A stretch of DNA of 64,000 bases from Hypanus sabinus (taxonomy: Eukaryota): assembly GCF_030144855.1 (NCBI RefSeq), contig NC_082710.1:149482001-149546000 (forward strand). Reading direction: 5' to 3'. This document shows positions 30,801 to 60,809 of the stretch, one piece after another; the stretch's first letter is position 1; the number at the start of each line of letters is the position of its first letter. The position numbers and the translations under genes were made by a program. The notes under the pieces are model-generated. The model was given only the letters and a program-made list of their open reading frames with translations. It had not been told where the DNA came from and ran no database searches.

Positions 30801-33800
30801 CTGAACGCAGTCGGATTGGGCGACCGTCTTTAGCAGGTACCCTGGTCAACGGAGATGAGACGTCCCCAATATCGCCCTCTCCCTGAGAGACGACTTTCGA
30901 TGTGATTCCATGAGGTTTTGTGTTGACCGCACAGCTTTTAGCCCAAAACAGTCCTATCTTCAAAAAATATTCCAAATTAATGAAATTTACAAAAACCATT
31001 AGTTGACACTCATGCACTGTCTGGTTGTCTATCACCTCCACAGCGCAAACAGTGCATGACAGCGGCATTTTTTTGCTAAATCACTTTAAAATGCGCTGAA
31101 ATACAGAATGAAGGCAAGGCGAGTACTTCCGAAGCAGGCAGGGCATCTAACAGTGGTAAGGAGGGCAAAGGTTCACGGACCAGGCGACCTCAGCTTTTCT
31201 CGGCCATTTGGCTGAGATCAGGCGTTCTTCTTAGAGCGCAGCTATAACAAGTGTTCTTATTAGGACACAGTACGAATGCGACGCAGGGCGGCGATGGAAA
31301 GAAGGATCGGTGAAGAAAGCGGTGAGAGTAGGGCTTCGACTTGCCGGGCTGGAATGCAGAACGCTGTATGATGGTGTCCGAGGTTAGAAAACGTACCCAG
31401 GAGAAAGTGTAATACACGTACCCAATGTCACCCTCACATTGAGAGACCTCTTCCAATGTGGCTGCATAATGTTGTATGTGTATCCCAGGTTCTTTTCGCC
31501 CAAAACTACACTTTATTCAGAGATACCTCAAAATAAATTTATTTACAAAAACCATTTGTTTACTCTGATGCTCCGTCTGCTTGTGGCATCTAATGAGCGC
31601 ACAGTATGCTGTGCAGCGGCATTTTGTTTGGCTAAATCGATTTCAAATACACTAACGTATTGAAATAAAGCAAAGATTGGTGCAAACTAATCTGGCAGGG
31701 AGCTGTCAATCATCAGGAGTGCATGGGGTCCTGGGCCAGTCGATCTTAGCCCTTCTCGACATTTTGGCTGAGATCAGGCGTTCTTATTAGAGCAGAGCTA
31801 TGCCAAGTGTCCTTATTAGGACACAGAGAGGAAGCGAGCCAGAGCGGCGATGGAAGAAAGGATCGTTGAAAGAGGCGGGGAGTGCAGTGCTTCGACTTGT
31901 GGGACTGGAAACCAAAGCGCTGTAAGGGTAGGTGTCCTAGATTAGAAAACGTTCCTTGGAGAACGGGTAATTAAGGTACCCAATGTCGCCCTCACACTGG
32001 GAGACCACTTCCTTTGCGGATGCATCAGTTTTGGTGTGAATCGCAGGTTTTTCTAGCCACAAAATACACTTTATGCAGAAATATTTCAAAATAAAGTTAA
32101 TTACAAAGACCATTAGTAGACCCTGATGCTCTGTCTGGTTGTGTCCTCCAGTTAGCGCAAAGGTGTTTTACAGCGGCTTTTTTTTTTTTTAGCTAAATCG
32201 CCTTAAAATGCGCTAATGTATTGAATGAAATCAAAGGTTCTTGCAAAATGACCGGGCAGGGAGCAATCAGAGGTGAAGAGGGCAAAGGTTCGCGGACCAT
32301 GTGATCTCAGCTCTTCACAGCCTATTGGCTGAGATCAGGCGTTCTTATCAGAGCGCAGCTACACCAAGTCTTCATTATAATTGAGAACGAAAGCGACGCA
32401 GGGCGGTGATGGAAGACGATGGCGGGACAGATCAGCGGATCGGTGATAAAAGCTGAGGAGTGCAGCGCTACGACTTGCGGGGTGGGAATACAGAACGCAG
32501 TCGGATTGAGCGTCCGACTTAAGCAGGTACTCTGGTCAACGGAGATAATACGTCCCCAATGTCGCCCTCTCTCTGAGAGACGACTTCCTATGTGATTCCA
32601 TGAGGTATTGTGTTGACCGCACAGCTTTTAGCCCAAAAAAGTCCTAGCTTCAAAAATATTCCAAATTAATGTTATTTACAAAAACCATTAGTTGACACTC
32701 ATGCACTGTCTGGTTGTCTGTCACCTCCACGGAGCGCAAACAGTGCATGACAGCGGCATTTCTTTGCTAAATCACATTAAAATGCGCTGAAATACAGAAT
32801 GAAGGCAAGGAGAGTACTTCCGAAGCAGGCAGGGCATCTAACTGTGGTAATGAGGGCAAAGGTTCACGGACCAGGCGACCTCAGCTTTTCTCGGCTTTTT
32901 CGCTGAAGTCAGGCGTTCTTCTTAGAGCGCAGCTATAACAAGTGTTCTTATTAGGACACAGAAAGAATGCGACGCAGGGCGACGATGGAGAGAAGGCGGT
33001 GAGAGCAGTGCTTCGACTCGCCGGGCTGGAATGCAGAACGCTGTATGATGGTGTCCGAGGTTAGAAAACGCACCCAGGAGAACGTGTAATAAACGTACCC
33101 AATGTCGCCCTCGCATTGAGAGACCTCTTCCAATGTGGCTGCATCATGTTGTGTGTGTATCCCAGGTTCGTTTTCCCGAAAATACACTTTATTCAGAAAT
33201 TCCTCAAAATAAATTTATTTGCAAAACCCATTTGTTTCCTCTGATGCTCTGTCTGTTTGTGACCTGCAGTGAGGGCAAAGTGTGCTGTGCAGCGACATTT
33301 TGTTTGGCTAAATCGCATTAAAATGCAGGAACGTATTGAAATAAAGCAAGGGTTGGTTCTAACTAATCTGACCGGGAGCTGCCAATCATCAGGAGTACAT
33401 GGGTTTCTGGGCCAGTCGATCGCAGACCTTCTCGGCAATTTGGCTGAGATCAGGCGTTCTTATTAGAGCAGAGCTATGCCAAGTGTTCTTATTAGGACAC
33501 AGAGAGGAAGCGACGCAGAGCGCCGATGGAAAAAAGGATCGGTGAAAGAGGCGGGGAGAGCAGTGCTTCGATTTGAGGGACTGGAAACCAAAACGCTGTA
33601 AGGGTAGGTGTCCTAGATTACAAAACGTTCCTTGGACAACGGGTAATTAACGTACCCAGTGTCGCCCTCACATTGAGAAACCTCTTCCCACGTGGCTGTA
33701 TCATGTGTGTGGATCCCAGGTTCTTTTAGCTCAAAAATACACTTTATTCAGAAATACCTCAAAATAAATTTATTTACAAAAACCATTTGTTTACCCTGAT

Positions 33801-36299
33801 GCTCTGTCTGCTTGTGACATCTAATGAGCGCAAAGTGTGCTGTGCAGCGGCATTTTGTTTGGCTAAATCGCATTTAAGTACACTAACATAGTGAAATAAA
33901 GCAAAGATTGTTGCAAACTAATCTGGCAGGGAGCTGTCAATCATCAGGAGTGCATGGGGTCCTGGGCCAGTCGATCTTAGCACTTCTCGGCATTTTGGCT
34001 GATATCAGGCGTTGTTATTAGAGCAGAGCTATAACAGGTGTTCTTATTAGGACACAGAGAGGAAGCGACGCAGAGCGGCGATGGAAGAAAGGATCGGTGA
34101 AAGAGGCGGGGAGAGCAGTGCTTCGACTTGAGGGACTGGAAAACACAGCGCTGTAAGGGTAGGTGTCCTAGATTAGAAAACGTTCCTTGGAGAACGGGTA
34201 ATTAACGGGTAACCCAATGTAGACCTCACCTTGAGAGACCTCTTCCTTTGCGGATGCATCAGTTTTGGTGTGAATCGCAGGTTTTTCTAGCCACAAAATA
34301 CACTTTATGCAGAAATATTTCAAAATCAAGTTAATTACAAACACCATTAGTAGACCCTGATGCTCTGTCTGGTTGTGTCCTCCAGTTAGCGCAAAGGGTG
34401 TTTTACAGCGGCGTTTTTTTTTGCTAAATTGCCTTAAAATAAGCTAATGTATTGAATGAAATCAAAGGTTCTTGCAAAATGACCGGGCAGGGAGCAATCA
34501 GAGGTGAAGAGGGCAAAGGTTGGCGGACCATGTGATCTCAGCTCTTCACAGCCTATTGGCTGAGATCAGGCGTTCTTATCAGAGCGCAGCTACACCAAGT
34601 CTTCATTATAATTGAGAACGAAAGCGACGCAGGGCGGTGATGGAAGACGATGGCAGGACAGATCAGCGGATCGGTGATAAAAGCTGAGGAGTGCAGCGCT
34701 ACGACTTGCGGGGTGGGAATACAGAACGCAGTCGGATTGAGCGTCCGACTTAAGCAGGTACTCTGGTCAACGGAGATAATACGTCCCCAATGTCGCCCTC
34801 TCTCTGAGAGACGACTTCCTATGTGATTCCATGAGGTATTGTGTTGACCGCACAGCTTTTAGCCCAAAAAAGTCCTAGCTTCAAAAATATTCCAAATTAA
34901 TGTTATTTACAAAAACCATTAATTGACACTCATGCACTGTCTGGTTGTCTATCACCTCCACAGCGCAAACAGTGCATGACAGCGGCATTTTTTTGCTAAA
35001 TCACTTTAAAATGCGCTGAAATACAGAATGAAGGCAAGGCGAATACTTCCGAAGCAGGCAGGGCATCTAACAGTGGTAAGGTGGGCAAAGGTTCACGGAC
35101 CAGGCGACCTCAGCTTTTCTCGGCCATTTGGCTGAGATCAGGCGTTCTTCTTAGAGCGCAGCTATAACAAGTGTTCTTATTAGGACACAGTACGAATGCG
35201 ACGCAGGGCGGCGATGGAAAGAAGGATCGGTGAAGAAAGCGGTGAGAGCAGGGCTTCGACTTGCCGGGCTGGAATGCAGAACGCTGTATGATGTTGTCTG
35301 AGGTTAGAAAGCTTACCCAGGAGAAAGTGTAATAAACGTACCCAATGTCACCCTCACATTGAGAGACCTCTTCCAATGTGGCTGCATAATGTTGTATGTG
35401 TATCCCAGGTTCTTTTCGCCCAAAACTACACTTTATTCAGAAATACCTCAAAATAAATTTATTTACAAAAACCATTTGTTTACTCTGAAGCTCTGTCTGC
35501 TTGTGACATCTAATGAGCGCAAAGTGTGCTGTGCAGCGGCATTTTGTTTGGCTAAATCGCATTTAAGTACACTAACGTAGTGAAATAAAGCAAAGGTTGG
35601 TGCAAACTAATCTGGCAGGGAGCTGTCAATCATCAGGAGTGCATGGGGTCCTGGGCCAGTCGATCTTAGCCCTTCTCGACATTTTGGCTGAGATCAGGCG
35701 TTCTTATTAGAGCAGAGCTATGCCAAGTGTTCTTATTAGGACACAGAGAGGAAGCTACGCAGAGCGCCGATGGAAAAAAGGATCGGTGAAAGAGGCGGGG
35801 AGAGCAGTGCTTCGATTTGAGGGACTGGAAACCAAAACGCTGTAAGGGTAGGTGTCCGAGATTAGAAAACGTTCCTTGGAGAACGGGTAATTAAGGTACC
35901 CAATGTCGCCCTCACACTGGGAGACCACTTCCTTTGCGGATGCATCAGTTTTGGTGTGAATCGCAGGTTTTTCTAGCCACAAAATACACTTTATGCAGAA
36001 ATATTTCAAAATAAAGTTAATTACAAACACCATTAGTAGACCCTGATGCTCTGTCCGGTTGTGTCCTCCAGTTAGCGCAAAGGGTGTTTAACAGCAACCT
36101 TTTTTTTTAGCTAAATCGCCTTAAAATGCGCTAATGAATTGAATGAAATCAAAGGTTCATGCAAAATGACCGGGCAGGGAGCAATCAGAGGTGAAGAGGG
36201 CAAAGGTTCGCGGACCATGTGATCTCAGCTCTTCACAGCCTATTGGCTGAGATCAGGCGTTCTTATCAGAGCGCAGCTACACCAAAGTCTTCATTTAGG

Positions 36300-39200
36300 A
36301 TTGAGAACGAAAGCGACGCAGGGCGGTGATGGAAGACGATGGCGGGACAGATCAGCGGATCGGTGATAAAAGCTGAGGAGTGCAGCGCTACGACTTGCGG
36401 GGTGGGAATACAGAACGCAGTCGGATTGAGCGTCCGACTTAAGCAGGTACTCTGGTCAACGGAGAGAATACGTCCCCAATGTCACCCTCTCCCTGAGAGA
36501 CGACTTCTTATGTGATTCCATGAGGTTTTGTGTTGACCGCCGAGCTTTTAGACCAAAAAAGTCCGACCTTCAAAAATATTCCAAATTAATGATATTTACA
36601 AAAACCATTAGTTGACACTCCTGCACTGTCTGGTTGTCTGTCACCTCCACTGAGCGCAAACAGTGCATGACAGCGGCATTTTTTTGCTAAATCACCTGAA
36701 AATGCGCTAAAATACAGAATGAAGGCAAGGATAGTACTTCCGAAGCAGGCAGGGCGCTATCAGTGGTCAGGAGGGCAAAGGTTACCGGACCAGGCGACCT
36801 CAGCTTTTCTCGGCTTTTTCGCTGAAGTCAGGCGTTCTTCTTAGAGCGCAGCTATAACAAGTGTTCTTATTAGGACACAGAAAGAATGCGACGCAGGGCA
36901 GCGATGGAAAGAAGGATCGGTGAAGAAGGCGGTGAGAGCAGGGCTTCGACTTGCCGGGCCGGAATGCGGAACGCTGTATGATGGTGTCCGAGGTTAGAAA
37001 GCTTACCCAGGAGAACGTGTAATAAACGTACCCAATGTCGCCCTCACATTGAGGAACCTCTTCCTACGTGGCTGTATCATGTTGTGTGTGGATTCCAGGT
37101 TCTTTTTCCCAAAAATACACTTTATTCAGAAGTACCTCAAAATAAATTTATTTGCAAAACCCATTTGTTTCCTCTGATGCTCTGTCTGTTTGTGACCTGC
37201 AGTGAGGGCAAAGTGTGCTGTGCAGCGCTATTTTGTTTGGCTAAATCGCATTAAAATGCAGGAACGTATTGAAATAAAGCAAGGGTTGGTTCTAACTAAT
37301 CTGGCCGGGAGCTGTCAATCATCAGGAGTGCATGGGTTTCTGGGCCAGTCGATCGCAGACCTTCTCGGCAATTTGGCTGAGATCAGGCGTTCTTATTAGA
37401 GCAGAGCTATGCCAAGTGTTCTTATTAGGACACAGAGAGGAAGCGACGCAGAGCGCCGATGGAAAAAATGATCGGTGAAAGAGGCGGGGAGAGCAGTGCT
37501 TCGATTTGAGGGACTGGAAACCAAAACGCTGTAAGGGTAGGTGTCCGAGATTACAAAACGTTCCTTGGACAACGGGTAATAAACGTACCCAGTGTCGCCC
37601 TCACATTGAGAAACCTCTTCCTACGTGGCTGTATCATGTGTGTGGATCCCAGGTTCTTTTAGCTCAACAATACACTTTATTCAGAGATACCTCAAAATAA
37701 ATTTATTTACAAAAACCATTTGTTTACCCTGATGCTCTGTCTGCTTGTGACATCTAATGAGCGCAAAGTGTGCTGTGCAGCGGCATTTTGTTTGGCTAAA
37801 TCGCATTTAAGTACACTAACGTAGTGAAATAAAGCAAAGATTGTTGCAAACTAATCTGGCAGGGAGCTGTCAATCATCAGGAGTGCATGGGGTACTGGGC
37901 CAGTCGATCTTAGCCCTTCTCGGCATTTTGGCTGATATCAGGCGTTCTTATTAGAGCGCAGCTATAACAGGTGTTCTTATTAGGACACAGAGAGGAAGCG
38001 ACGCAGAGCGGCGATGGAAGAAAGGATCGGTGAAAGAGGCGGGGAGAGCAGTGCTTCGACTTGAGGGACTGGAAAACACAGCGCTGTAAGGGTAGGTGTC
38101 CTAGATTAGAAAACGTTCCTTGGAGAACGGGTAATTAACGGGTAACCCAATGTAGACCTCACCTTGAGAGACCTCTTCCTTTGCGGATGCATCAGTTTTG
38201 GTGTGAATCGCAGGTTTTTCTAGCCACAAAATACACTTTATGCAGAAATATTTCAAAATAAAGTTAATTACAAACACCATTAGTAGACCCTGATGCTCTG
38301 TCTGGTTGTGTCCTCCAGTTAGCGCAAAGGGTGTTTAACAGCAACCTTTTTTTTTAGCTAAATCGCCTTAAAATGCGCTAATGAATTGAATGAAATCAAA
38401 GGTTCATGCAAAATGACCGGGCAGGGAGCAATCAGAGGTGAAGAGGGCAAAGGTTCGCGGACCATGTGATCTCAGCTCTTCACAGCCTATTGGCTGAGAT
38501 CAGGCGTTCTTATCAGAGCGCAGCTACACCAAGTCTTCATTTAGGATTGAGAACGAAAGCGACGCAGGGCGGTGATGGAAGACGATGGCGGGACAGATCA
38601 GCGGATCGGTGATAAAAGCTGAGGAGTGCAGCGCTACGACTTGCGGGGTGGGAATACAGAACGCAGTCGGATTGAGCGTCCGACTTAAGCAGGTACTCTG
38701 GTCAACGGAGAGAATACGTCCCCAATGTCACCCTCTCCCTGAGAGACGACTTCTTATGTGATTCCATGAGGTTTTGTGTTGACCGCCGAGCTTTTAGACC
38801 AAAAAAGTCCGACCTTCAAAAATATTCCAAATTAATGATATTTACAAAAACCATTAGTTGACACTCCTGCACTGTCTGGTTGTCTGTCACCTCCACTGAG
38901 CGCAAACAGTGCATGACAGCGGCATTTTTTTGCTAAATCACCTGAAAATGCGCTAAAATACAGAATGAAGGCAAGGATAGTACTTCCGAAGCAGGCAGGG
39001 CGCTATCAGTGGTCAGGAGGGCAAAGGTTACCGGACCAGGCGACCTCAGCTTTTCTCGGCTTTTTCGCTGAAGTCAGGCGTTCTTCTTAGAGCGCAGCTA
39101 TAACAAGTGTTCTTATTAGGACACAGAAAGAATGCGACGCAGGGCAGCGATGGAAAGAAGGATCGGTGAAGAAGGCGGTGAGAGCAGGGCTTCGACTTGC

Positions 39201-42200
39201 CGGGCCGGAATGCGGAACGCTGTATGATGGTGTCCGAGGTTAGAAAGCTTACCCAGGAGAACGTGTAATAAACGTACCCAATGTCGCCCTCACATTGAGG
39301 AACCTCTTCCTACGTGGCTGTATCATGTTGTGTGTGGATTCCAGGTTCTTTTTCCCAAAAATACACTTTATTCAGAAGTACCTCAAAATAAATTTATTTG
39401 CAAAACCCATTTGTTTCCTCTGATGCTCTGTCTGTTTGTGACCTGCAGTGAGGGCAAAGTGTGCTGTGCAGCGCTATTTTGTTTGGCTAAATCGCATTAA
39501 AATGCAGGAACGTATTGAAATAAAGCAAGGGTTGGTTCTAACTAATCTGGCCGGGAGCTGTCAATCATCAGGAGTGCATGGGTTTCTGGGCCAGTCGATC
39601 GCAGACCTTCTCGGCAATTTGGCTGAGATCAGGCGTTCTTATTAGAGCAGAGCTATGCCAAGTGTTCTTATTAGGACACAGAGAGGAAGCGACGCAGAGC
39701 GCCGATGGAAAAAATGATCGGTGAAAGAGGCGGGGAGAGCAGTGCTTCGATTTGAGGGACTGGAAACCAAAACGCTGTAAGGGTAGGTGTCCGAGATTAC
39801 AAAACGTTCCTTGGACAACGGGTAATAAACGTACCCAGTGTCGCCCTCACATTGAGAAACCTCTTCCTACGTGGCTGTATCATGTGTGTGGATCCCAGGT
39901 TCTTTTAGCTCAACAATACACTTTATTCAGAGATACCTCAAAATAAATTTATTTACAAAAACCATTTGTTTACCCTGATGCTCTGTCTGCTTGTGACATC
40001 TAATGAGCGCAAAGTGTGCTGTGCAGCGGCATTTTGTTTGGCTAAATCGCATTTAAGTACACTAACGTAGTGAAATAAAGCAAAGATTGTTGCAAACTAA
40101 TCTGGCAGGGAGCTGTCAATCATCAGGAGTGCATGGGGTACTGGGCCAGTCGATCTTAGCCCTTCTCGGCATTTTGGCTGATATCAGGCGTTCTTATTAG
40201 AGCGCAGCTATAACAGGTGTTCTTATTAGGACACAGAGAGGAAGCGACGCAGAGCGGCGATGGAAGAAAGGATCGGTGAAAGAGGCGGGGAGAGCAGTGC
40301 TTCGACTTGAGGGACTGGAAAACACAGCGCTGTAAGGGTAGGTGTCCTAGATTAGAAAACGTTCCTTGGAGAACGGGTAATTAACGGGTAACCCAATGTA
40401 GACCTCACCTTGAGAGACCTCTTCCTTTGCGGATGCATCAGTTTTGGTGTGAATCGCAGGTTTTTCTAGCCACAAAATACACTTTATGCAGAAATATTTC
40501 AAAATAAAGTTAATTACAAACACCATTAGTAGACCCTGATGCTCTGTCTGGTTGTGTCCTCCAGTTAGCGCAAAGGGTGTTTAACAGCAACCTTTTTTTT
40601 TAGCTAAATCGCCTTAAAATGCGCTAATGAATTGAATGAAATCAAAGGTTCATGCAAAATGACCGGGCAGGGAGCAATCAGAGGTGAAGAGGGCAAAGGT
40701 TCGCGGACCATGTGATCTCAGCTCTTCACAGCCTATTGGCTGAGATCAGGCGTTCTTATCAGAGCGCAGCTACACCAAGTCTTCATTTAGGATTGAGAAC
40801 GAAAGCGACGCAGGGCGGTGATGGAAGACGATGGCGGGACAGATCAGCGGATCGGTGATAAAAGCTGAGGAGTGCAGCGCTACGACTTGCGGGGTGGGAA
40901 TACAGAACGCAGTCGGATTGAGCGTCCGACTTAAGCAGGTACTCTGGTCAACGGAGAGAATACGTCCCCAATGTCACCCTCTCCCTGAGAGACGACTTCT
41001 TATGTGATTCCATGAGGTTTTGTGTTGACCGCCGAGCTTTTAGACCAAAAAAGTCCGACCTTCAAAAATATTCCAAATTAATGATATTTACAAAAACCAT
41101 TAGTTGACACTCCTGCACTGTCTGGTTGTCTGTCACCTCCACTGAGCGCAAACAGTGCATGACAGCGGCATTTTTTTGCTAAATCACCTGAAAATGCGCT
41201 AAAATACAGAATGAAGGCAAGGATAGTACTTCCGAAGCAGGCAGGGCGCTATCAGTGGTCAGGAGGGCAAAGGTTACCGGACCAGGCGACCTCAGCTTTT
41301 CTCGGCTTTTTCGCTGAAGTCAGGCGTTCTTCTTAGAGCGCAGCTATAACAAGTGTTCTTATTAGGACACAGAAAGAATGCGACGCAGGGCAGCGATGGA
41401 AAGAAGGATCGGTGAAGAAGGCGGTGAGAGCAGGGCTTCGACTTGCCGGGCCGGAATGCGGAACGCTGTATGATGGTGTCCGAGGTTAGAAAGCTTACCC
41501 AGGAGAACGTGTAATAAACGTACCCAATGTCGCCCTCACATTGAGGAACCTCTTCCTACGTGGCTGTATCATGTTGTGTGTGGATTCCAGGTTCTTTTTC
41601 CCAAAAATACACTTTATTCAGAAGTACCTCAAAATAAATTTATTTGCAAAACCCATTTGTTTCCTCTGATGCTCTGTCTGTTTGTGACCTGCAGTGAGGG
41701 CAAAGTGTGCTGTGCAGCGCTATTTTGTTTGGCTAAATCGCATTAAAATGCAGGAACGTATTGAAATAAAGCAAGGGTTGGTTCTAACTAATCTGGCCGG
41801 GAGCTGTCAATCATCAGGAGTGCATGGGTTTCTGGGCCAGTCGATCGCAGACCTTCTCGGCAATTTGGCTGAGATCAGGCGTTCTTATTAGAGCAGAGCT
41901 ATGCCAAGTGTTCTTATTAGGACACAGAGAGGAAGCGACGCAGAGCGCCGATGGAAAAAATGATCGGTGAAAGAGGCGGGGAGAGCAGTGCTTCGATTTG
42001 AGGGACTGGAAACCAAAACGCTGTAAGGGTAGGTGTCCGAGATTACAAAACGTTCCTTGGACAACGGGTAATAAACGTACCCAGTGTCGCCCTCACATTG
42101 AGAAACCTCTTCCTACGTGGCTGTATCATGTGTGTGGATCCCAGGTTCTTTTAGCTCAACAATACACTTTATTCAGAGATACCTCAAAATAAATTTATTT

Positions 42201-42800
42201 ACAAAAACCATTTGTTTACCCTGATGCTCTGTCTGCTTGTGACATCTAATGAGCGCAAAGTGTGCTGTGCAGCGGCATTTTGTTTGGCTAAATCGCATTT
42301 AAGTACACTAACGTAGTGAAATAAAGCAAAGATTGTTGCAAACTAATCTGGCAGGGAGCTGTCAATCATCAGGAGTGCATGGGGTACTGGGCCAGTCGAT
42401 CTTAGCCCTTCTCGGCATTTTGGCTGATATCAGGCGTTCTTATTAGAGCGCAGCTATAACAGGTGTTCTTATTAGGACACAGAGAGGAAGCGACGCAGAG
42501 CGGCGATGGAAGAAAGGATCGGTGAAAGAGGCGGGGAGAGCAGTGCTTCGACTTGAGGGACTGGAAAACACAGCGCTGTAAGGGTAGGTGTCCTAGATTA
42601 GAAAACGTTCCTTGGAGAACGGGTAATTAACGGGTAACCCAATGTAGACCTCACCTTGAGAGACCTCTTCCTTTGCGGATGCATCAGTTTTGGTGTGAAT
42701 CGCAGGTTTTTCTAGCCACAAAATACACTTTATGCAGAAATATTTCAAAATAAAGTTAATTACAAACACCATTAGTAGACCCTGATGCTCTGTCTGGTTG
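36300..42800 (+). repeat. Near-identical tetrameric higher-order repeat (A-D-B-C)x~3, period 2,246 bp
   Basis: Identical ORFs at 37202/39448/41694 and 37506/39752/41998, exactly 2,246 bp apart. Confidence 0.92.
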
Positions 42801-44031
42801 TGTCCTCCAGTTATCGCAAAGGGTGTTTTACAGCGGCGTTTTTTTTTTGCTAAATCGCCTTGAAATGCGCTAATGTATTGAATGAAATCAAAGGTTCGTG
42901 CGAAATGACCGGGCAGGGAGCAATCAGAGGTGAAGAGGGCAAAGGTTCGCGGACCATGTGATCTCAGCTCTTCACAGCCTATTGGCTGAGATCAGGCGTT
43001 CTTATCAGAGCGCAGCTATACCAAGTCTTCATTTAGGATTGAGAACGAAAGCGACGCAGGGCGGTGATGGATGAGGATGGCCGGACAGATCAGCAGATCG
43101 GTGATGAAGGCCGAGGAGTGCAGCGCTACTACTTGCGGGCTGGAAATACAGAACGCAGTCGGATTGAGCGTCCGACTTAAGCAGGTACTCTGGTCAACGG
43201 AGATAATACGTCCCCAATATCGCCCTCTCTCTGAGAGACGACTTCCTATGCGATTCCATGAGGTTTTGTGTTGACCACAGAGATTTTACCCCAAAAAAAG
43301 TCCGATCTTCAAAAATATTCCAAATTAATGTTATTTACAAAAACCATTAGTTGACACTCATGCACTGTCTGGTTGTCTGTCACCTCCACTGAGCGCAAAC
43401 AGTGCATGACAGCGGCATTTTTTTGCTAAATCTCCTGAAAATGCGCTGAAATACAGAATGAAGGCAAGGATAGTACTTCCGAAGCAGGCAGGGCAACTAA
43501 CAGTGGTAATGAGGGCAAAGGTTCACGGACCAGGCGACCTCAGCATTTCTCGGCCTTTTGGCTGAGATCAGGCGTTCTTCTCAGAGCGCAGCTATAACAA
43601 GTGTTCTTATTAGGACACAGAAAGAATGCGACGCAGGGCAGCGATGGAAAGAAGGATCGGTGAAGAAGGCGGTGAGAGCAGGGCTTCGACTTGCCGGGCT
43701 GGAATGCAGAACGCTGTATGATGGTGTCCGAGGTTAGAAAACTTACCCAGATGAACGTGTAATAAACGTACCCAATGTCGCCCTCACATTGAGAAACCTC
43801 TTCCTACGTGGCTGTATCATGTTGTGTGTGGATCTCAGGTTCTTTTGCCCAAAAATACACTTTATTCAGAAATACCTCAAAATAAATTTATTTGCAAAAC
43901 CCATTTGTTTACTCTGATTCTCTGTCTGTTTGTGACCTGCAGTGAGGGCAAAGTGTGCTGTGCACCGGCATTTTGTTTGGCCAAATCACATTTAAGTACA
44001 CTAACGTAGTGAAATAAAGCAAAGGTTGGTG

Positions 44032-44097
44032 CTACCTAATCTGGCAGGGAACTGCCGATCATCAGGAGTGCATAGGTTCCTGGGCCAGTCGATCCCA
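44032..44097 (+). pseudogene. U1 snRNA 5' fragment (nt ~1-65) inside a satellite monomer (representative best copy; a version is present in essentially every monomer)
   Basis: 44041-44097 CTGGCAGGGAACTGCCGATCATCAGGAGTGCATAGGTTCCTGGGCCAGTCGATCCCA aligns ungapped to U1 nt 9-65 at 60654-60710 with 45/57 identities (hand count). Confidence 0.88.
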
Positions 44098-44168
44098 GCG
44101 CTTCTCGGCCTTTTGGCTGAGATCAGGCGTTCTTATTAGAGCGCAGCTATAACAAGTGGTCTTATTAG
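44097..44168 (+). pseudogene. U2 snRNA 5' fragment (nt 1-34 joined to 44-52) plus a second partial copy, inside a satellite monomer (representative copy)
   Basis: AGCGCTTCTCGGCCTTTTGGCTGAGATCAGGCGT matches the vertebrate U2 5' end ATCGCTTCTCGGCCTTTTGGCTAAGATCAAGTGT at 30/34. It continues TCTTAT(T/C)AG (U2 TCTTATCAG). CAAGTG(T/G)TCTTATTAG repeats 29 bp later. Confidence 0.88.
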
Positions 44169-47100
44169 GACACAGAGAGGAAGCGACGCAGAGCGGCGAT
44201 GGAAGAAAGGATCGGTGAAAGAGGCGGGGAGAGCAGTGCTTCGATTTGAGGGACTGGAAACCAAAACGCTGTAAGGGTAGGTGTCCGAGATTACAAAACG
44301 TTCCTTGGACAACAGGTAATGAAGTTAGCCAATATCGCCCTCACCCTGCGACACCTCTTCCTTTGTGGATGCATGTGGTTGAGTGTGGTTCCCAGGTTCT
44401 CTTAGCCCAAAAAATACAGTTCATTCAGAAATATTGGAAAGGAAAGTAATTTAGAAAAACCATTTGTTTACTCTGATGTTCTGTCTGTCTATTAACGCCA
44501 GTGAGTGCAAAGTGTGCTGTGTCGCGGAATTTTCGTTGGCTAAATCGCATTAAAATGCACAAACGTATTGAAAGAAGACAAAGGTAGGTACTATCTAATT
44601 TGGCAGCGAGCTGTCAATCATCAGGAGTGCATAGATTTCTGGGCCAGTCGATCCCAGCGCTTCTCGGCCTTTTGGCTGACATCAGGCGTTCTTATTAGAG
44701 CAGAGCTATGACAAGTGTTCTTATTAGGACACAGAGAGGAAGCGGCGATGGAAAAAAGGATCGGTGAAAGAGTCGGGGAGAGCAGTGCTTCGATTTGAGG
44801 GACTGGAAACCAAAACGCTGTAAGGGTAGGTGTCCGAGATTAGACAACGTTCCTTGGAGAACGGGTAATTAAGGTACCCAATGTCGCCCTCACCCTGAGA
44901 CACCTCTTCCTTTGTGGATGCATGAGTTATGGTGTGAATCGCAGGTTTTTCTAGCCACAAAATACACTTTATTCAGAAATATTTCAAAATAAAGTTATTT
45001 ACAAAGACCATTAGTAGACCCTGATGCTCTGTCTGGTTGTGTCCTCCAGTTAGCGCAAAGGGTGTTTTACAGCGGCGTTTTTTTTTTAGCTAAATCGCCT
45101 TAAAATGCGCTAATGTATTGAATGAAATCAAAGGTTCGTGCGAAATGACCGGGCAGGGAGCAATCAGAGGTGAAGAGGGCAAAGGTTCGCGGAACATGTG
45201 ATCTCAGCTCTTCACAGCCTATTGGCTGAGATCAGGCGTTCTTATCAGAGCGCAGCTACACCAAGTCTTCATTTAGGATTGAGAACGAAAGCGACGCAGG
45301 GCGGTGATGGATGAGGATGGCCGGACAGATCAGCAGATCGGTGATGAAGGCCGAGGAGTGCAGCGCTACTACTTGCGGGCTGGAAATACAGAACGCAGTC
45401 GGATTGAGCGTCCGACTTAAGCAGGTACTCTGGTCAACGGAGATAATACGTCCCCAATATCGCCCTCTCTCTGAGAGACGACTTCCTATGCGATTCCATG
45501 AGGTTTTGTGTTGACCACAGAGATTTTACCCCAAAAAAAGTCCGATCTTCAAAAATATTCCAAATTAATGTTATTTACAAAAACCATTAGTTGACACTCA
45601 TGCACTGTCTGGTTGTCTGTCACCTCCACTGAGCGCAAACAGTGCATGACAGCGGCATTTTTTTGCTAAATCACATTAAAATGCGCTGAAATACAGAATG
45701 AAGGCAAGGATAGTACTTCCGAAGCAGGCAGGGCATCTAACTGTGGTAATGAGGGCAAAGGTTCACGGACCAGGCGACCTCAGCATTTCTCGGCCTTTTG
45801 GCTGAGATCAGGCGTTCTTCTCAGAGCGCAGCTATAACAAGTGTTCTTATTAGGACACAGAAAGAATGCGACGCAGGGCAGCGATGGAAAGAAGGATCGG
45901 TGAAGAAGGCGGTGAGAGCAGGGCTTCGACTTGCCGGGCTGGAATGCAGAACGCTGTATGATGGTGTCCGAGGTTAGAAAACGTACCCAGGAGAAAGTGT
46001 AATACACGTACCCAATGTCACCCTCACATTGAGAGACCTCTTCCAATGTGGCTGCATAATGTTGTATGTGTATCCCAGGTTCTTTTCGCCCAAAACTACA
46101 CTTTATTCAGAGATACCTCAAAATAAATTTATTTACAAAAACCATTTGTTTACTCTGATGCTCCGTCTGCTTGTGACATCTAATGAGCGCAAAGTGTGCT
46201 GTGCAGCGGCATTTTGTTTGGCTAAATCGATTTCAAATACACTAACGTATTGAAATAAAGCAAAGATTGGTGCAAACTAATCTGGCAGGGAGCTGTCAAT
46301 CATCAGGAGTGCATGGGGTCCTGGGCCAGTCGATCTTAGCCCTTCTCGACATTTTGGCTGAGATCAGGCGTTCTTATTAGAGCAGAGCTATGCCAAGTGT
46401 CCTTATTAGGACACAGAGAGGAAGCGAGCCAGAGCGGCGATGGAAGAAAGGATCGTTGAAAGAGGCGGGGAGTGCAGTGCTTCGACTTGTGGGACTGGAA
46501 ACCAAAGCGCTGTAAGGGTAGGTGTCCTAGATTAGAAAACGTTCCTTGGAGAACGGGTAATTAAGGTACCCAATGTCGCCCTCACACTGGGAGACCACTT
46601 CCTTTGCGGATGCATCAGTTTTGGTGTGAATCGCAGGTTTTTCTAGCCACAAAATACACTTTATGCAGAAATATTTCAAAATAAATTATTTACAAAGACC
46701 ATTAGTAGACCCTGATGCTCTGTCTGGTTGTGTCCAGTTAGCGCAAAGGGTGTTTTACAGCGGCGTTTTCTTTGGCTAAATCGCCTTAAAATGCGCTAAT
46801 GCATTGGATGAAATCAAAGGTTCCTACGAACAGACCGGAGAGGGAGCTATCAGAGGTGAAAAGGGCAAAGGCTCCCGGAACAGGCGATCCCAGCGTTTCT
46901 CGGCCTTTTGGCTGAGATCAGGCGTTCTTCTTAGAGCGCAGCTGTAACAAGTGTTCTTATTAGGACACAGAAAGAATGCGACGCAGGGCGGCGATGGAAA
47001 GAAGGATCGGTGAAGAAGGCGGTGAGAGCAGGGCTTCGACTTGCCGGGCTGGATTGCGGAACGTTGTATGACAGAGTGTCCGAGGTCAGAAAACGTACAT

Positions 47101-49613
47101 AGGAGAACGTGGAGTAAATGTAACCAATGTCTCCCTCACCTTGAGAGACCTCTTCCTATGTGGCTGCATCAGGTTGTGTGTGGATCCCAGGTTCTCTTAG
47201 CCCAAAAATACACTTTCTTCTGAAATATTTCAAAATAAATTAATTTACAACCACCATTTGTTTACTCTCATGCTCTGTCTGTTTGTGACCTCCAGTGAGC
47301 GCAAAGTGTGCTGTGCAGCGGCATTTTGTTTGGCGAAATCGCATTAAAATGCACTAACGTATTGAAAGAAAGCAAAGGTTGGTACTAACTAATCTGGCAG
47401 GGAGCTGTCAATCATCAGGATTGCATGGGTTCCTGAGCCAGTCGATCCCAGCGCTTCTCGTACTTTTGTCCGAGATCAGGCGTTCTTATTAGAGCGCAGC
47501 TATAACGAGTGTTCTTATTCGGACACTGAGAGAGAACGACGCAGAACGGCGATGGAAAAAGTATCGGTAAAGAAGGCCGGGAGGGCAGTGCTTCGACTTG
47601 CGGGACTGGAAACCACAGCGCTGTAAGGCCAGGTGTCCGAGGTTAGACAACGTTCCTTGGACAACGGGTAATAAAGGTACTCAATGTTGCCCTTTACCCT
47701 GAGAGACCTCTTCCTTTGTGGATGCATCAGTTTTGGTGTGAATTGCCGGTTTGTTTTTAGCCACAAAAGACGCTTTATTCAGAAATAATTCAGTATAAAG
47801 TTATTTACAAAGACCATTAGTTGACTCTGATGCTCTGTCTGTCTGTGTCCTCCAGTTAGCGCAAAGGGTGTTTCACAGCGTCATTTTTATTTTTGGCTGA
47901 ATCGCTTTAAAATGCGCTAATATATTGAATGAAATCAAAGGTTCGTGCAAAATGACCGGGCAGGGAGCAATCAGAGGTGAAAAGGCAAAGGTTCGCGGAC
48001 CATGTGATCTCAGCTCTTCACAGCCTATTGGCTGAGATCAGGCGTTCTTATCAGAACGCAGCTATACCAAGTGTTCATTTAGGATTGAGAACGAAAGCGA
48101 CGCAGCTTGGTGATGGAAAAGAGGATGGCGGGACAGATCCGCGGATCGGTGATGAAGGCCGGGGAGTGCAGCGCTACGTCTTAAGGGGCAGGAATAGAGA
48201 ACGCAGTCAGATTGAGCGTCCGAGGTTAGTTGGTGTCCCGGACAAGGGAGATGATATGTCCCGAATGCCGGCCTCTCCCTGAGAGACGACTTCCTATGTG
48301 ACTGCATCAGGTTTTGTGTTGACCGCAGATCTTTTAGCCCGAAAAGTGTCCTATCTTTAGAAATATTCCAAATTAATGATATTTACAAAAACCATTATTT
48401 GACACTCATGCACTGTCTGGTTGTCTGTCACCTCCAATTAGCGCAAACAGTGCATGACCGCGGCATTCTTTTGCTAAATCGATTTATAATGCGCTAAAAT
48501 ACATAACGAAGGCAAAGATCGTATTACCTAACGAGGCAGGGCGCTATCAGTGGTCAGGATGCAAAGGTTAGCTGACCAGGCGATCTCAGCGTTTCTCGGC
48601 CTTTTGGATGAGATCAGGCGTTCTTCTCAGAGCGCAGCTATAACAAGTGTTCTTATTAGGACACAGAAAGAATGCGACGCAGGGCGACGATGGAAAGAAG
48701 GCGGTGAGAGCAGTGCTTCGACTCGCCGGGCTGGAATGCAGAACGCTGTATGATGGTGTCCGAGGTTAGAAGCCGGTACCCTGGACAGTGGGAAAACTCG
48801 TCCCCAATGTCGCCCTCACGCGGTGGGAAGGCTTCGTATGTGTCTGCATCAGGTTTCGTGTGAATCCCACAGTTTTTTTTTCAAAATAATTTACTTTATT
48901 GAGAAGTATTCCAAAGTAATATTATTTACCAAAACCATTAGTTGACTCTCAGTCCTTATCTGTTTAGTACTAAAATTCTCATGCTCTGTTTCTCTGTTTG
49001 TGACCCCCAATTAGCGCATTACAGCGGCACTTATATTTGGCTAAAATGCGCTAACTTCCAGAATGCCGGCAAAGGTCAGGGTTATATACGTATAAAACTA
49101 TTTATTCACCAAAATCAACAGCTCCGTTTTCACCTGAGGGCCGATCCGCCATCATGGAAATCGGTCCGCCACACCACTACGCATGCGCACGGCCAGCCTC
49201 AGCAGCTGCCCCAAGCGGAGCCAAAGGGCAGGGCAGTTCTATTTTGACTCCCTCCAGGAGTGCACCAACGGGTCACCCCGTTGTCTACTTCACAATAAAG
49301 ATGTTTGCAATAAATTATTCGTTGACTCTCAAACCCCTAGTCAGGAATAAAACCTATTTACAATTAAACTCTTTACAACAAAACAAGGCGTTGACTCTCA
49401 TTGCTTTACAGTCTTGTGGCTGTATAATGAGCAAATCTGACCTGGATTGTAATCACTTGGGAGCAAGTGACTATTATAAAGGTTGCAGCCACTCCTGTGG
49501 CACTATGTTGATTCATCTATCCACACCGCTGATGAGGGGTATACTCCTCACCATCCGACCCCTCCCACCCCCGGGGTTGACGAACCCTAAACTGGACCTT
49601 CCGCAATGGGCCT

Positions 49614-49692
49614 TGGTACACAAAACGCTGGTGGAAAGCCGCAGGCCAGGCAGCATAGGAAGAGTCGACGTTTCGGGCCGAGACCTTTCGAC
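49614..49692 (-). mobile_element. Penelope-associated repeat fragment with truncated minimal hammerhead-like motif
   Basis: The minus strand reads CGAAAGGTCTCGGCCCGAAACGTCGACTCTTCCTATGCTGCCTGGCCTGC, the same family as 54,222-54,325. Confidence 0.55.
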
Positions 49693-50950
49693 ATAACGGA
49701 TTGTTGTCGGTTCAAGGCGGAGGATTTCGCCGGTTGCTATGACGTCACCACCCGGCATGCCGCAGGCGGGCAGAAAGTGCAACAGTATTTAATCGAGGAG
49801 AGGAGCGAGGCGCCGCTGTCGCTACTTCAAGCACAACCCCTCTTCGCCGAGGCAACACAGCAAGAATGAACGGTTACGGTACAAATGCTCAACCCCTATG
49901 TACCTGTCGTTCACGTCCTCACGTTCCGAGCGCGGTATGTGGAGAGCGTGGGAATTGTGTGAACGTCAACGACAATCTAGGAATATGGACCAGTGAACTC
50001 CAAGTCAGGGTGAAGCTGAGGGTGGACTCCAGCAGCTTTGTCATCCACGCACCCTCAGTCTTCGCAATCGGAGGGAACCATCCCCCTTGCAGAACACACA
50101 GGACCCACCACGACGAGGAGGAGTCCACGGAAGAGGGGGGAGCCGAGGGGTAAGAAGGAGCATGGAGCGTGGTTGCCAAACGCAAAAAGCCCCAGAAGGC
50201 TCCTCCAAGAAGACAGCCGGCGGAGAAAGCGGAGAACCCAAAGAAAAGGGCCGTGGAATCTAATACATCCTCTGGTCACCTCTCCACTTCGGCAGAGGAA
50301 GACGGTGGGCAACAGTCGAGAGAACTGTGAAAGTGCTGGCCACCCCCCAAATACAGGAGGTGGAGATCAGCAGAGCCCCTCAGCTCCGGGAAACCGGGAG
50401 CAGTATCGCATCTGGGGCAGCCCCAGGAATCCCTCCGCGTTCAGAGCCCGCACTGCCTCTCCCTAGCGAGGACTACCCGCAGTCCCTGAGCCCACAGCTG
50501 GGGGCAAGACATCACCCAGACGGTGGCATGAGGGGTCAGGAGCGCGAAGGGGAGGACGAGGGTCTGTAAAGGATGACGGACCTTAAACCAGCGACCTTAA
50601 ACGTTCTCATCTGCGTCAGCGCGCTCCAGTACTTGAACACTGTGAATGCCGACGTGACCTTCCTCCAAGTGTGCAGTGTGCCGTGCGGAGAGAGCGGCTC
50701 CCGCCGCTGCTGGTGACGGCCCGGCCGGTCGTTCTGGCCGGAGACTTCAACTGCACCATTGATGCGGCTGGACGATCCGGCAGCGCCGACGGCAGGCTGG
50801 ACAGTACCTCCAGACTCCTGAATGGACACGGTGAAGACAGCCAGGCTGCGCGACGCCTTTGGCGACCCCACAGGTGGAGCGCAGCCGCAAGCCACCTGGA
50901 CACGACCGGACCGCTCAGCCCGCTCCCGGATCGACTTCCTCTTGACTAAC
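49693..50950 (+). mobile_element. Degenerate Tx1-clade non-LTR retrotransposon: ORF1 and start of ORF2 (APE endonuclease)
   Basis: Frameshifted ORF1-like peptides: DCCRFKAEDFAGCYDVT..APLSLL, VTVQMLNPYVPVVHVLTF, LGIWTSELQVRVKLRVD..HAPSVFAIGG. APE-like peptides: RPVVLAGDFNCTID, TWTRPDRSARSRIDFLL. Confidence 0.85.
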
Positions 50951-50974
50951 TGGTCATTAGAAATTAAAGGGAAC

Positions 50975-51560
50975 ATTGCAGTGCAGGTCCTGTGATCCAA
51001 TTCCTTCCCTACTATTGAGTGAATTTATCCTGGAGCAAAGATCCCCACTGTTCAGAGTGAACGTTGTGGGAAGGTGAGGCTGGAAGCAACATCCAAGCAA
51101 GAAGAGTCTGGGGCGGTTGTAGTTAAGTGAGACTGTCGGAGACAAGATAGGCCTGGGTGAGTGAGGTAGTGTGAGCTCAGGCCAGACAAGTGAGGCATCT
51201 GTAATGAGACTTTTACAGAAAGGACTTCCTTTTGCCCCTTTACACAACAAGGACGGAGAAGACAGGTATAATGGAAGGTTGTGAAACTAAAGGACAATTG
51301 TCTTTACTAACCAAGATAACATCGGTTGTCAGCTTGAAGTTCGACTGACTTTTAACACCTCCGTGACAGTTAAGGAATTCAAACAGATGCAATGTATTCA
51401 ATGATTGACATCAGTAACTGACAAGCCAATTCTATGTACCATTTGCAGTTTCTTGCCCCGCCTTCAGAACAGTGTGGGTGACAAGGGCCATGCTTGTGCA
51501 CTAGTAAAATAAAAGCAATGTTTGAGTTGTGAGAGTTTGTGCTCTGTGCCCAGTTATTTT
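50975..51560 (+). mobile_element. Possible LTR-like interspersed repeat interrupting the Tx1 copy
   Basis: Abrupt loss of Tx1 coding similarity. AATAAA (~51,508) is followed by a GT-rich tract. No family recognised. Confidence 0.25.
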
Positions 51561-51654
51561 TGTTATATTAGTTATTTATTTTGATATTGGCGACGACATC
51601 AGAATCAGGACATGGTTTAATATTGTGAAATTTGTTGATTCCAATTCTGGTTCT

Positions 51655-51790
51655 GAAAGATCCCCACCATCCTGACTGCACTCTCATCTCACTACGACCA
51701 TCGGGTAAGAGGTACAGTAGCCTTAGGTTCCTCACTACCAGGTTCAAGAAGAGTTCCTACCCGATAACCATCAGGCTCCCGAACCAGCTT
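51655..51790 (+). mobile_element. Rex1/Babar-type LINE 3' ORF fragment
   Basis: Translates to KDPHHPDCTLISLRPSGKRYSSLRFLTTRFKKSSYPITIRL, matching the typical Rex1 C-terminal 'LPSGRRYR..TTR..NSF.P' motif. Confidence 0.75.
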
Positions 51791-52026
51791 TGATAAATTC
51801 ACCCAGCTGGGCCTGCAACTCACAGACTCACTTCCACAGACACGATGCAAATCAGGTTCTCAATATTATTTTTTTTAATTGCACAATTTGTCTGGAGGAA
51901 GGTGAAATAGCCTCTGCAGCGTTTCATCCCCAGCAGCTGTGTGACAGAGGACCCTCTGATCTCTGTTCCCAGAGACAAACACCATGCGCTCATGGTATTG
52001 GAGTATAAAAGTTGCATTATTTGCTG

Positions 52027-52607
52027 TGTAACCAAAAGAGATGTAGTCAGCTTTGAAACTTGCTATTTGCTATGCATGTATCCAAAATGAAATCCTAGGA
52101 ATGTAAAAGACAATGGTGTGTTAGAGGAAGCTAAGAGATGTAAATTATGTAATCTGAGTTTGCTATTTGCTATGCATGTACCCAATTTAGCAGGAGAATG
52201 AAATATTAAGAATGTAAAAGTCAATGGTGTGTTAATGAGAGGTAGCTAAGAGGTGTAGATAAAAGAGATGTAGTCAGGATTAAGTCACGAAGTATTAAGA
52301 ATGTAAACTTGCTATTTGCTAGAGAATGAAATCTTAGGAATGTAAAAGACAATGGTGTGTTAATGAGAGGCAGCGAAGAGATGTAGATTAGAACATGATT
52401 AAGTCAATGGGTAAAAATAATAGTGACAAGATGTACGTGTGGTACGTGTGAAACTGGACCAGGAGATTGCTATAAAAAATGCCGTGTCCGAGGATCAGCG
52501 ACTAGCTCAATGACTGTCTCAGCTTTGATTTGCAAATTAAAGTTTAACCCTTCTTGAAGAATCTTCTGCGTCTCCTGGTCATTTGTGAGGCACGAAAAAC
52601 CGCGACA
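52027..52607 (+). mobile_element. Probable LTR (TG...CA) with internal imperfect tandem repeats; retroelement leader-like sequence follows to ~53,010
   Basis: Three imperfect repeats of TTGCTATTTGCTA...GAATGTAAAAG.CAATGGTGTGTTA at 52,060-52,390, TATAAAAA at ~52,471, ATTAAA at ~52,536, and an end at ...CGCGACA. Confidence 0.45.
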
Positions 52608-53019
52608 ATGGCAGATCACCAACTCGCTGAAAGGCAAACTCTGTGACTGAGGTGCAGGACACAGGCACAGAGACTGAGCTGGGATGCTTGCGACAACGTG
52701 AACGTTGAGGAATCTTGACACGGAGCTCTGATATGGAGTCTTCACACGGAGACGGGGTTTTCATGGAATATCTTGAAACTGGAGCTGAACTTAGAACTAC
52801 CGGTTCTAAGCGGTCGGGAATCGAAATTACCACACGGGAGTAGACCAGAGGTTGTGACGCCGGGATTCTTACACTGCCATGCTTGATGGAGACCAGGTGC
52901 GCTCGCATTAAGCGAATTAGCAGTAAGTGGGAAATTAAGGATCGGAATCAAGGCATAATCAAAGGAGATTTGGGGCAAAATAGTGGATTAACAATCGGGA
53001 CCATGGCAAACTTTGGTCA

Positions 53020-53245
53020 CCCGAAACTTGTTGGTCTACCAGCACATCGCGATGTCCGTGGAGGAATGCTGCTGATTGGCTCAGTCCAGGCTGCAGGGTC
53101 CGTGCTGCGGGATGCCCTGAAGCTCAGCGCTGCCACCACAAAGGGTAAGTAGGGAATGTCCATGGAGTAGGGTTCCTCACCAACTGGAGAAAGAGGGGAT
53201 GAATAGGTAATTTTGTAGTTTTTTTTTAATAACATTTATTTTGTT
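53020..53245 (+). mobile_element. Tx1-clade ORF2 C-terminus and 3' end
   Basis: LLVYQHIAMSVEECC*LAQSRLQ..VLRDALKLSAATTK resembles the Tx1 ORF2 terminus. It is followed by a T-rich TTTTAATAACATTTATTTTG end like those at 58.4 and 62.98 kb. Confidence 0.75.
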
Positions 53246-53728: not shown

Positions 53729-53760
53729 GGGACACCTAGTGGCTGGTTTCAGAACTGCAG
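53729..53760 (-). promoter_or_regulatory. CTCF-like site with upstream (ZF9-11) motif
   Basis: Minus strand CTGCAGTTCTGAAACCAGCCACTAGGTGTCCC: TGCAG upstream module plus CCACTAGGTG core at the usual spacing. Confidence 0.65.
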
Positions 53761-53796
53761 GTGGCTGGTCGGAGACTGTTTCCCCGTAGGGCAGAT

Positions 53797-53975: not shown

Positions 53976-54139
53976 ATGCTTACCTGGCAGGGAACCGTCG
54001 GTGATCAGGAGGGCGGAGGTTCCGGGACGAGGCTATCCCATTGCACTCCGGGTGTGCTGACGCCCGCGATGTCCCCAAATGCGGCATACTCGACTGGATA
54101 ATTTGTGTTAGTGGGGGACTGAGTTCGCGCTCTGTACTG
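53976..54139 (+). ncRNA. RNU1: U1 snRNA variant, full length (164 nt), degenerate (variant gene or young pseudogene)
   Basis: ATGCTTACCTGGCAG...GATCAGGAGG...ATTGCACTCC...AATTTGTG...GGGGGACTG. It carries A3G and mismatches in helix H, SL1, SL3 and SL4. Confidence 0.9.
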
Positions 54140-54221
54140 GTCTAATACACAAAAAAATAGAATGTAATGATTCTAAGTAAGCTGTATTTAATGTTTCCAA
54201 ATGCTGAATGACAGGGACACG

Positions 54222-60645: not shown

Positions 60646-60809
60646 ATACTTACCTGGCAGGGAACTGTCGGTGATCAGGAAGGCCGAGGTTCCAGGACGA
60701 GGCTATCCCATTGCACTCCGGGTGTGCTGACGCCTGCGATGTCCCCAAATGCGGGATACTCGACTGCACAATTTGTGGTAGTGGGGGACTGCGTTCGCGC
60801 TTTCCCCTG
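60646..60809 (+). ncRNA. RNU1: U1 snRNA gene (164 nt), variant stem-loop I, probably functional
   Basis: Canonical ATACTTACCTG 5' end, U1A loop ATTGCACTCC, Sm site AATTTGTGG, and canonical SL4 GGGGACTGCGTTCGCGCTTTCCCCTG. Stems are preserved by compensatory changes. Confidence 0.96.

Follow-up and report, generated by a model that had tools for sequence, protein, structure and literature searches.

A stingray satellite with a repeat unit composed of U1-, U2- and Tx1-like sequences

Introduction

How does a satellite repeat come to hold pieces of two spliceosomal RNAs next to pieces of a retrotransposon? The question is raised by 64,000 nucleotides (nt) of the stingray Hypanus sabinus (NCBI RefSeq assembly GCF_030144855.1, contig NC_082710.1, positions 149,482,001 to 149,546,000, forward strand), the whole of which is referred to here as the window. 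It contains a long tandem array whose unit carries parts of the U1 and U2 small nuclear RNAs (snRNAs) and of a Tx1 long interspersed nuclear element (LINE). The original prediction took this unit for the amplified 5' junction of a Keno-like, U2-headed Tx1 that had entered loop II of U1 and whose body would lie just beyond the array. The comparisons presented here bear out much of the proposed composition; the history they suggest is another one, in which the unit probably descends from a short, internally deleted Tx1 derivative and the Tx1 remnant adjoining the array most likely represents a second copy.

Heads of this kind have been described before. In crocodilian SINEU-1, U1 pieces have repeatedly been added ahead of U2-headed elements, and some Keno-related Tx1-Mar LINEs carry U1 or U2 heads (PMC4494074).

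The satellite array

The satellite unit measures about 558 base pairs (bp). Its tandem array occupies the window from position 1, where the window start cuts it, to 49075, always on the + strand:

1..49075, + strand: tandem array, about 88 units of 541-576 bp
44027..44585, + strand: reference monomer, 559 bp
48520..49075, + strand: terminal monomer, complete

Regular spacing is evident from 87 U2-head anchors, found from 55 to 48593, all on the + strand and at intervals of 541-576 bp. The roughly 88 units fall into three subtypes that make up a higher-order repeat of about 1.68 kb. When the 85 full units are clustered, the subtypes contain 24, 24 and 36 members, with 90-94% identity within a subtype and 69-78% across subtypes. 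Along the array the subtypes succeed one another as C-A-B, with occasional additional C units; subtypes in fixed order within a long head-to-tail array are what identifies a satellite with higher-order repeats. With a period above 500 bp the array escapes Tandem Repeats Finder; a repeat search does show it. Taken by itself, the satellite is ordinary transposon-derived satellite DNA.

For the comparisons below, a DNA profile was built from the 85 units and mapped onto the reference unit at 44027-44585. The terminal monomer covers profile positions 2-557 and is 71-75% like any subtype. The array stops at this whole unit, at 49075, 6 nt short of the phase of the next U1 nt 1, an arrangement with a chance of about 2%.

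Composition of the repeat unit

Read along the reference monomer, six parts can be told apart. L002 is a skate-type contig and L003 a little skate locus, both described further below; ORF and UTR stand for open reading frame and untranslated region.

44033..44097, + strand: U1 snRNA nt 1-65, to the start of loop II (profile positions 6-71 against the U1 gene at 60645-60710, E 1.8e-8)
44097..44139, + strand: U2 head, U2 nt ~1-33 joined to nt 43-52 (Rfam U2 24.4 bits, E 0.004; L002 alignment)
44140..44198, + strand: Tx1 5'UTR with spacer, second U2-derived box (44154-44168) and leader (L002 alignment)
44199..44297, + strand: ATG and decayed ORF1 N-terminus, 33 codons with one stop, peptide ending ...GNQNAVRVGVRDYK
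44308..44431, + strand: sense piece of distal Tx1 ORF2, from between the reverse transcriptase and zf-RVT domains (amino acids 54-95 of skate ORF L003:14069-15100)
44432..44585, + strand: 154 nt without assigned origin (profile positions 405-558)

The U1 piece tracks the local U1 sequence in stem-loop I. Its continuation, U1 nt 66-164, is absent behind every unit and behind the array, and neither MAFFT alignment nor profile search finds any likeness to U1 upstream regions ahead of the piece. The 3' half of the monomer was considered as a U1 promoter and is ruled out by the same two methods, which find no similarity. The adjoining U2 head has lost nine nucleotides spanning the Keno target site 38/39. 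Profile positions 71-154 match L002 68-166 (E 3.4e-5), and the match includes the spacer, which is not derived from U2, together with the U2 head and second box on either side of it. The monomer has the U1/U2-derived head by which SINEU elements are recognised, and the first ~270 bp of the monomer are supported as a fusion, at loop II, of U1 nt 1-65 to the 5' end of a U2-headed Keno-like Tx1. To that extent the predicted connection of a Keno-like element with U1 loop II stands. Loop II as a Tx1 target was considered and rejected, since TTGCAC is not consistently found behind Tx1 3' ends.

In the reference unit the ORF1 ATG lies at 44199, 60 nt past the last base of the U2 head; each monomer keeps about 33-45 codons of ORF1, the ORF1-like peptide being encountered about 120 bp behind that head. 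All three peptides that had been predicted on the + strand behind the U2 head are present, namely RAGMQNAV*, GNQNAVRVGVR and EIQNAVGLSVR, the last also as (E/G)IQNAVGLSVR. The Tx1 ORF1 N-terminal motif that the prediction had cited is likewise real and occurs in Mobula, Heterodontus and skate ORF1 proteins. Proteins of the family start ...G(A/P/Q)G(I/V)(K/R)NTVR(L/V)(S/T)V(R/K)D (Mobula P0001, P0002 and P0006; Heterodontus P0009; skate L002), and genuine ORF1 N-termini read ...GAGIKNTVRLSVRD; in Mobula, EKRAGES-type repeats stand before this stretch, and the monomers have an echo of them. Aligned locally to the 85 monomers in six frames, three Mobula N-termini score 69, 69 and 57, against best scores of 54, 52 and 52 among 200 composition-preserving shuffles and best minus-strand scores of 29-38. 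The ORF1 protein of the shark Heterodontus, used alone, gives no significant score against the monomers. Past 'VRD', no ORF1 likeness of the monomers rises above shuffles, and none reaches the ORF1 start of the flanking copy. A monomer ORF1 continuing to 'DCCGF' and abutting the flank ORF1 was tried and rejected, as the likeness is not above shuffles and the stretch is ORF2.

This ORF2 stretch is a 123-nt piece found in every monomer, 10 nt past the ORF1 start piece, with profile positions 282-404 matching L003 14228-14350 (nhmmer E 5.3e-11). In tblastn, dozens of monomers match amino acids 54-95 of the last reading frame of ORF2 with the peptide ...VPNVALTLR.LF..GCI..., the best E being 3e-6. 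For the remaining 154 nt, no profile match to three Tx1 3'UTRs of the window appears on either strand, even at E 100, and their only likeness, a weak one, is to 49286-49335. In some subtypes AATAAA stands ~12 nt ahead of the unit end. An antisense Tx1 3' tail was entertained as the source of part of the monomer and discarded: the only blastn matches are AT-rich, at E ~0.08, and the 3'UTR profile search is negative as stated.

Judged by these alignments, the monomer joins U1 to a U2-headed Keno-like Tx1 with an internal deletion, and this chimera was amplified as a satellite. The prediction of an amplified 5' junction was right as to the U1 piece, the U2 head, the 5'UTR and the ORF1 start, but the monomer also holds a distal ORF2 piece that such a junction does not account for.

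Relatives in skates and likeness to Keno

The original prediction had proposed looking for U2-derived 5' ends in the family of the flanking Tx1. Both L002 and L003 have such ends, and these are related to the monomer; relatedness of the 5' ends and similarity to ORF1, the two relations on which the prediction depended, are thus both found. On L002, clean U2 nt 1-52 (Rfam 61.5 bits) is followed by further boxes of U2 nt 38-52 and then by the ORF1 ATG. Full-length copies of the family accordingly carry a U2-derived 5' end, whose 5'UTR the monomer head shares.

L003 contains two full-length relatives in tandem (L003:9897-21350). Their ORF1 encodes two RNA-binding domains and a zinc knuckle, and ORF2 matches Exo_endo_phos (E 4e-13), RVT_1 (E 3e-38) and zf-RVT (E 4e-12). 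ORF2 of the family therefore has an APE endonuclease followed by a reverse transcriptase, the latter seen through L003 and the endonuclease in the window as well. Where the two copies meet, the poly(A) of copy 1 leads into U2 nt 39-50 and then into the U2-box leader of copy 2. This is the 3' junction described for Keno, which enters U2 at nt 38/39, the U2 sequence resuming at nt 39 past the element (PMC4640811). The arrangement in L003 also shows that resident copies receive new ones in the U2-derived box of their 5'UTR, the two standing in tandem with the same orientation. No U2 follows the 3' end of any Tx1 copy in the window; loose matches to U2 nt 39-52 number 2, with 0.63 expected by chance.

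A second case of U1 ahead of U2 is found in the little skate at L001:9520-9800, where U1 nt 1-48 and then U2 nt 24-46 precede an ORF1 whose ATG is at 9778. Stacking of U1 on U2 hence appears to recur in batoids, the L001 junction being different from that of the monomer. By the domain content, 5' ends and junctions compared here, the source family of both the Tx1 parts of the monomer and the flank copy is best described as a Keno-like Tx1.

The Tx1 remnant beside the array

Right of the array, a patchwork of repeats is followed by a Tx1 remnant on the + strand:

49076..49692, unstranded: patchwork between array and Tx1, 617 bp
49162-49359: repeat of ~100 copies, right of the array
49286-49335: weak likeness to monomer positions 405-453
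49618-49691, - strand: 73 nt of a repeat present in thousands of copies, truncated at either end, directly left of 49693
49693..50557, + strand: Tx1 ORF1 without its first ~65 codons, starting 'ITDCCRF'
50573..50968, + strand: ORF2 start with APE-type endonuclease and an internal deletion (~amino acids 60-127), 46-63% identical to skate ORF2, E 6e-27
50969..51880, unstranded: non-Tx1 repeats at the expected place of the reverse transcriptase
51881..51961, + strand: ORF2 piece, amino acids 254-280 of the last skate ORF2 reading frame
51962..53021, unstranded: nested insertion of abundant repeats; contigs of three sequencing runs join 51956/51962 to 53020/53031
53022..53245, + strand: ORF2 C-terminus (to ~53170) and 3' tail motif, with 53022-53155 corresponding to skate ORF2 amino acids 311-355

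That the flank holds a + strand Tx1 deprived of its ORF1 N-terminus, with DCCRF at 49693 as its start, had been predicted and is confirmed by tblastn, which places the beginning at ORF1 codon ~66. Against Mobula ORF1, 49693-50078 is 51-72% identical (E 2e-40). About 120 zinc-knuckle codons are missing at 50078/50085, and the ORF1 C-terminus follows at 50085-50557. Contigs from related rays have ~289 extra nt at 50078-50085, and the zinc-knuckle loss is therefore private to this genome or assembly. The ORF at 49866-50150 matches Pfam RBD_ZCCHC3_2nd (E 1.4e-7). An exhaustive search with this ORF retrieved eight ORF1-type proteins, from Mobula hypostoma, M. birostris, Heterodontus and little skate; a word search with the flank ORF1 piece gave no matches.

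Farther along, the ORF at 50671-50946 has a weak Pfam Exo_endo_phos match (E 3e-4), and the 3' tail motif reaching ~53245 is common to the Tx1 copies at 58.4 and 62.98 kb. The predicted continuation through endonuclease, nested insertions and ORF2 end is borne out in these parts. The reverse transcriptase, however, is lost altogether and not merely interrupted: comparison with the ORF2 reading frames of L003 finds no reverse transcriptase domain in the flank remnant.

Translated comparison of the monomers with the flank detects U1 likeness only. Within the patchwork, 49382-49477 has a weak likeness (E 0.11) to the ORF2 stretch of the monomer (...ALTL...CGCI...) and may be a very decayed unit-like remnant, or chance. 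The repeat with thousands of copies also has a + strand copy at 54229-54306. The peptide 'GLGTQNA' at 49606 was considered as the N-terminus of the flank ORF1 and rejected, as it falls within the minus-strand fragment of this abundant repeat.

Genomic context and related rays

Two U1 genes lie beyond the remnant:

53976..54141, + strand: U1 gene, variant (Rfam 113 bits)
60646..60809, + strand: U1 gene (Rfam 155.7 bits)

Both belong to a + strand U1 cluster at 53689-60809 and share 60 nt of upstream sequence. A second copy of the upstream block at 53689-53763, found at 56715-56795, is not followed by U1 and may be what is left of a third unit whose gene was lost. Tx1 is dense in this region, with at least five 3' fragments between 49.7 and 63 kb (within 15 kb), all on the + strand. 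Apart from the flank remnant, four fragments of the ORF2 C-terminus and 3'UTR are found on the + strand, at 54686-54863, 57802-58405, 60913-61074 and 62075-62990, one of them starting 104 nt behind a U1 gene. No shared sequence stands behind the 3' ends of the Tx1 copies in the window. The density and single orientation of the fragments hint that the Tx1 family may prefer to land in the U1 repeat.

The sequencing runs used for comparison are 3-6% diverged in unique parts, and so come from relatives of this stingray. Three other runs contain the satellite, in contigs that are 89-91% alike and of high depth. The flank is present in the related rays too, and one contig ends at 49044, near the array edge, indicating that the edge is conserved. 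The array is old and shared with related rays. In the reads, the flank ORF1 is low-copy, the Tx1-derived part of the monomer shows no excess depth, and loose ends are not clustered at unit borders.

Origin of the array

The observations as a whole are probably best explained by a short, internally deleted founder, its amplification as a satellite, and a separate copy in the flank. The founder would have been a single Tx1 derivative of this kind that began at U1 nt 1. Its U2-headed RNA may have gained the U1 piece by template switching, the likeliest course being that the reverse transcriptase, at the 5' end of this RNA, jumped to U1 snRNA at nt 65 and copied it as far as nt 1; Kojima explained the heads of SINEU-1 and Tx1-Mar in this manner (PMC4494074). 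The founder would then have landed beside the U1 gene cluster, where the Tx1 family has accumulated. Unequal exchange could have multiplied it into the three-monomer higher-order repeat, leaving a less homogenised unit at the edge. A discrete founder, already internally deleted, is suggested because the array ends on a whole unit, the U1 part begins at nt 1 without a promoter, and ORF1 is fused to ORF2.

The remnant at 49693-53245 would be a separate decayed copy of the same ORF1 family. Read from the monomer into the flank, the order is ORF1 start, distal ORF2, 154 nt, patchwork, the rest of ORF1, endonuclease and ORF2 end, an order that one colinear element cannot give; the flank Tx1 is most likely a copy of its own. 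Its same-strand adjacency may reflect the tandem-landing habit seen in L003, and by this analogy the landing of a second Tx1 beside the founder could be explained.

Several points weigh against this explanation. Template switching as such leaves the position of the array, 5 kb from U1 genes, unexplained. The two Tx1 parts present in the monomer are precisely those missing from the flank, so that a single element may have been rearranged locally. The scores for the ORF1 N-terminus are modest (profile 11.5 bits, control maximum 8.5), and the comparison of 5' ends rests on skate loci and Mobula proteins, not on a full-length stingray Tx1. The left edge of the array is outside the window. Finally, the reads contain no dispersed solitary unit copies at ≥80% likeness, no poly(A) and no target-site duplication.

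The U1 piece could instead be of DNA origin, an unlikely but not negligible proposal. A Tx1 derivative would have inserted into a local U1 gene at nt 65/66, and the U1 piece would be target DNA or the product of read-through from the U1 promoter. The U2 head of Keno is acquired by this route. Two same-strand U1 genes stand 5 and 11.5 kb from the array, Tx1 fragments are concentrated in the U1 cluster, and in stem-loop I the U1 piece agrees with the local U1 sequence. The proposal is at odds with the absence of U1 nt 66-164 behind any unit or the array, with the missing promoter likeness ahead of the U1 piece, and with the 3' ends of the window Tx1 copies, which have neither a common sequence nor a consistent TTGCAC behind them.

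A broader scenario, to be held only tentatively and rather doubtful as a whole, is that a Keno-related Tx1 lineage in stingrays makes short SINEU-like derivatives with U1-on-U2 heads and lands preferentially in the U1 cluster, and that the satellite is one such derivative caught in the course of amplification.

The arrangement originally predicted is a single U2-headed Tx1 in or behind a U1 piece, of which only the 5' junction was amplified and of which 49693-53245 is the body. Array and remnant share a strand and are separated by 617 bp, and their parts are complementary: the monomer has the ORF1 start, the flank ORF1 begins ~20-30 codons later with no overlap, and the flank is without the ORF2 stretch carried by the monomer. 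The low copy number of the flank ORF1 in reads also means that chance adjacency is not trivial. These points are outweighed by the junction of ORF1 codon ~33 to distal ORF2, which is not colinear with the flank, by the end of the array on a whole unit in the phase of U1 nt 1, and by a spacer that is a patchwork of unrelated repeats. The argument from adjacency is further weakened by the density of Tx1 fragments here, at least five and all on the + strand. The flank copy is accordingly an improbable body for the amplified junction, and that part of the prediction is not upheld.

Equally little probability attaches to the unit itself being a mobile, non-autonomous SINEU-like retroposon that built the array by repeated tandem insertion and not by unequal exchange. 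The start of the unit at U1 nt 1, the AATAAA ~12 nt ahead of the unit end in some subtypes and the tandem insertion of the family in skate would agree with it. The unit junctions, however, show no poly(A) and no remnant of U2 nt 39-52, loose read ends do not cluster at unit borders, and the three-subtype higher-order repeat points to amplification in blocks.

That the Tx1 likeness is chance and the unit a satellite of snRNA pseudogenes is scarcely credible, as the individual ORF1 matches to the monomer are indeed weak (E 0.02-0.6) but the ORF2 piece (E 5.3e-11), the 5'UTR match past the U2 head and the shuffle test already contradict it.

With a short deleted founder as the favoured origin, the locus offers a base-level account of how two spliceosomal RNAs and two stretches from distant parts of a single LINE may be put together into a vertebrate satellite. 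The placing of U1 on a U2-headed Tx1, known from crocodilians, is extended to cartilaginous fishes, with a second junction in skate. The same-strand Tx1 remnants around the U1 genes also raise the question of whether U1 repeats are favoured by this family as U2 is by Keno.

Comparison with known systems

The nearest known counterpart is the SINEU-1/Tx1-Mar group (Kojima 2015, PMC4494074). Like its members, the stingray unit has a short U2 head with a 5' fragment of U1 in front and a link to Keno-related Tx1, and in both the snRNA pieces have lost their 3' parts and begin at nt 1 or close to it. Unlike them, the stingray unit keeps the Tx1 leader, the ORF1 start and a scrap of ORF2, and it has been observed as a satellite only, with no dispersed poly(A)-tailed copies. 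SINEU has been reported from crocodilians only, and the host here is a stingray.

Compared with Keno, the U2-gene-specific Tx1-clade LINE (Kojima and Fujiwara 2004, as cited in PMC4494074, PMC4640811), the family shares the APE endonuclease, the U2 head, the layout of ORF1 and ORF2 and, in skate L003, the U2 nt 38/39 site. It differs in that no U2 gene flanks any copy in the window and the monomer head has lost nine nucleotides around the target site. The snRNA-LINE retrocopies formed by template switching, such as U6-L1 (Buzdin 2002, Garcia-Perez 2007, as cited in PMC4494074), resemble the stingray unit in joining the 5' part of an snRNA to a LINE, with no snRNA promoter; in the stingray, by contrast, two snRNA pieces are stacked and the product has been tandemly amplified.

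As a satellite, the array behaves like other transposon-derived higher-order satellites, with head-to-tail units, a fixed order of subtypes, a homogenised core, a divergent edge unit and presence in related species. What sets it apart from them is its unit, a chimera in four parts to which two snRNAs and two widely separated regions of a single LINE have contributed.

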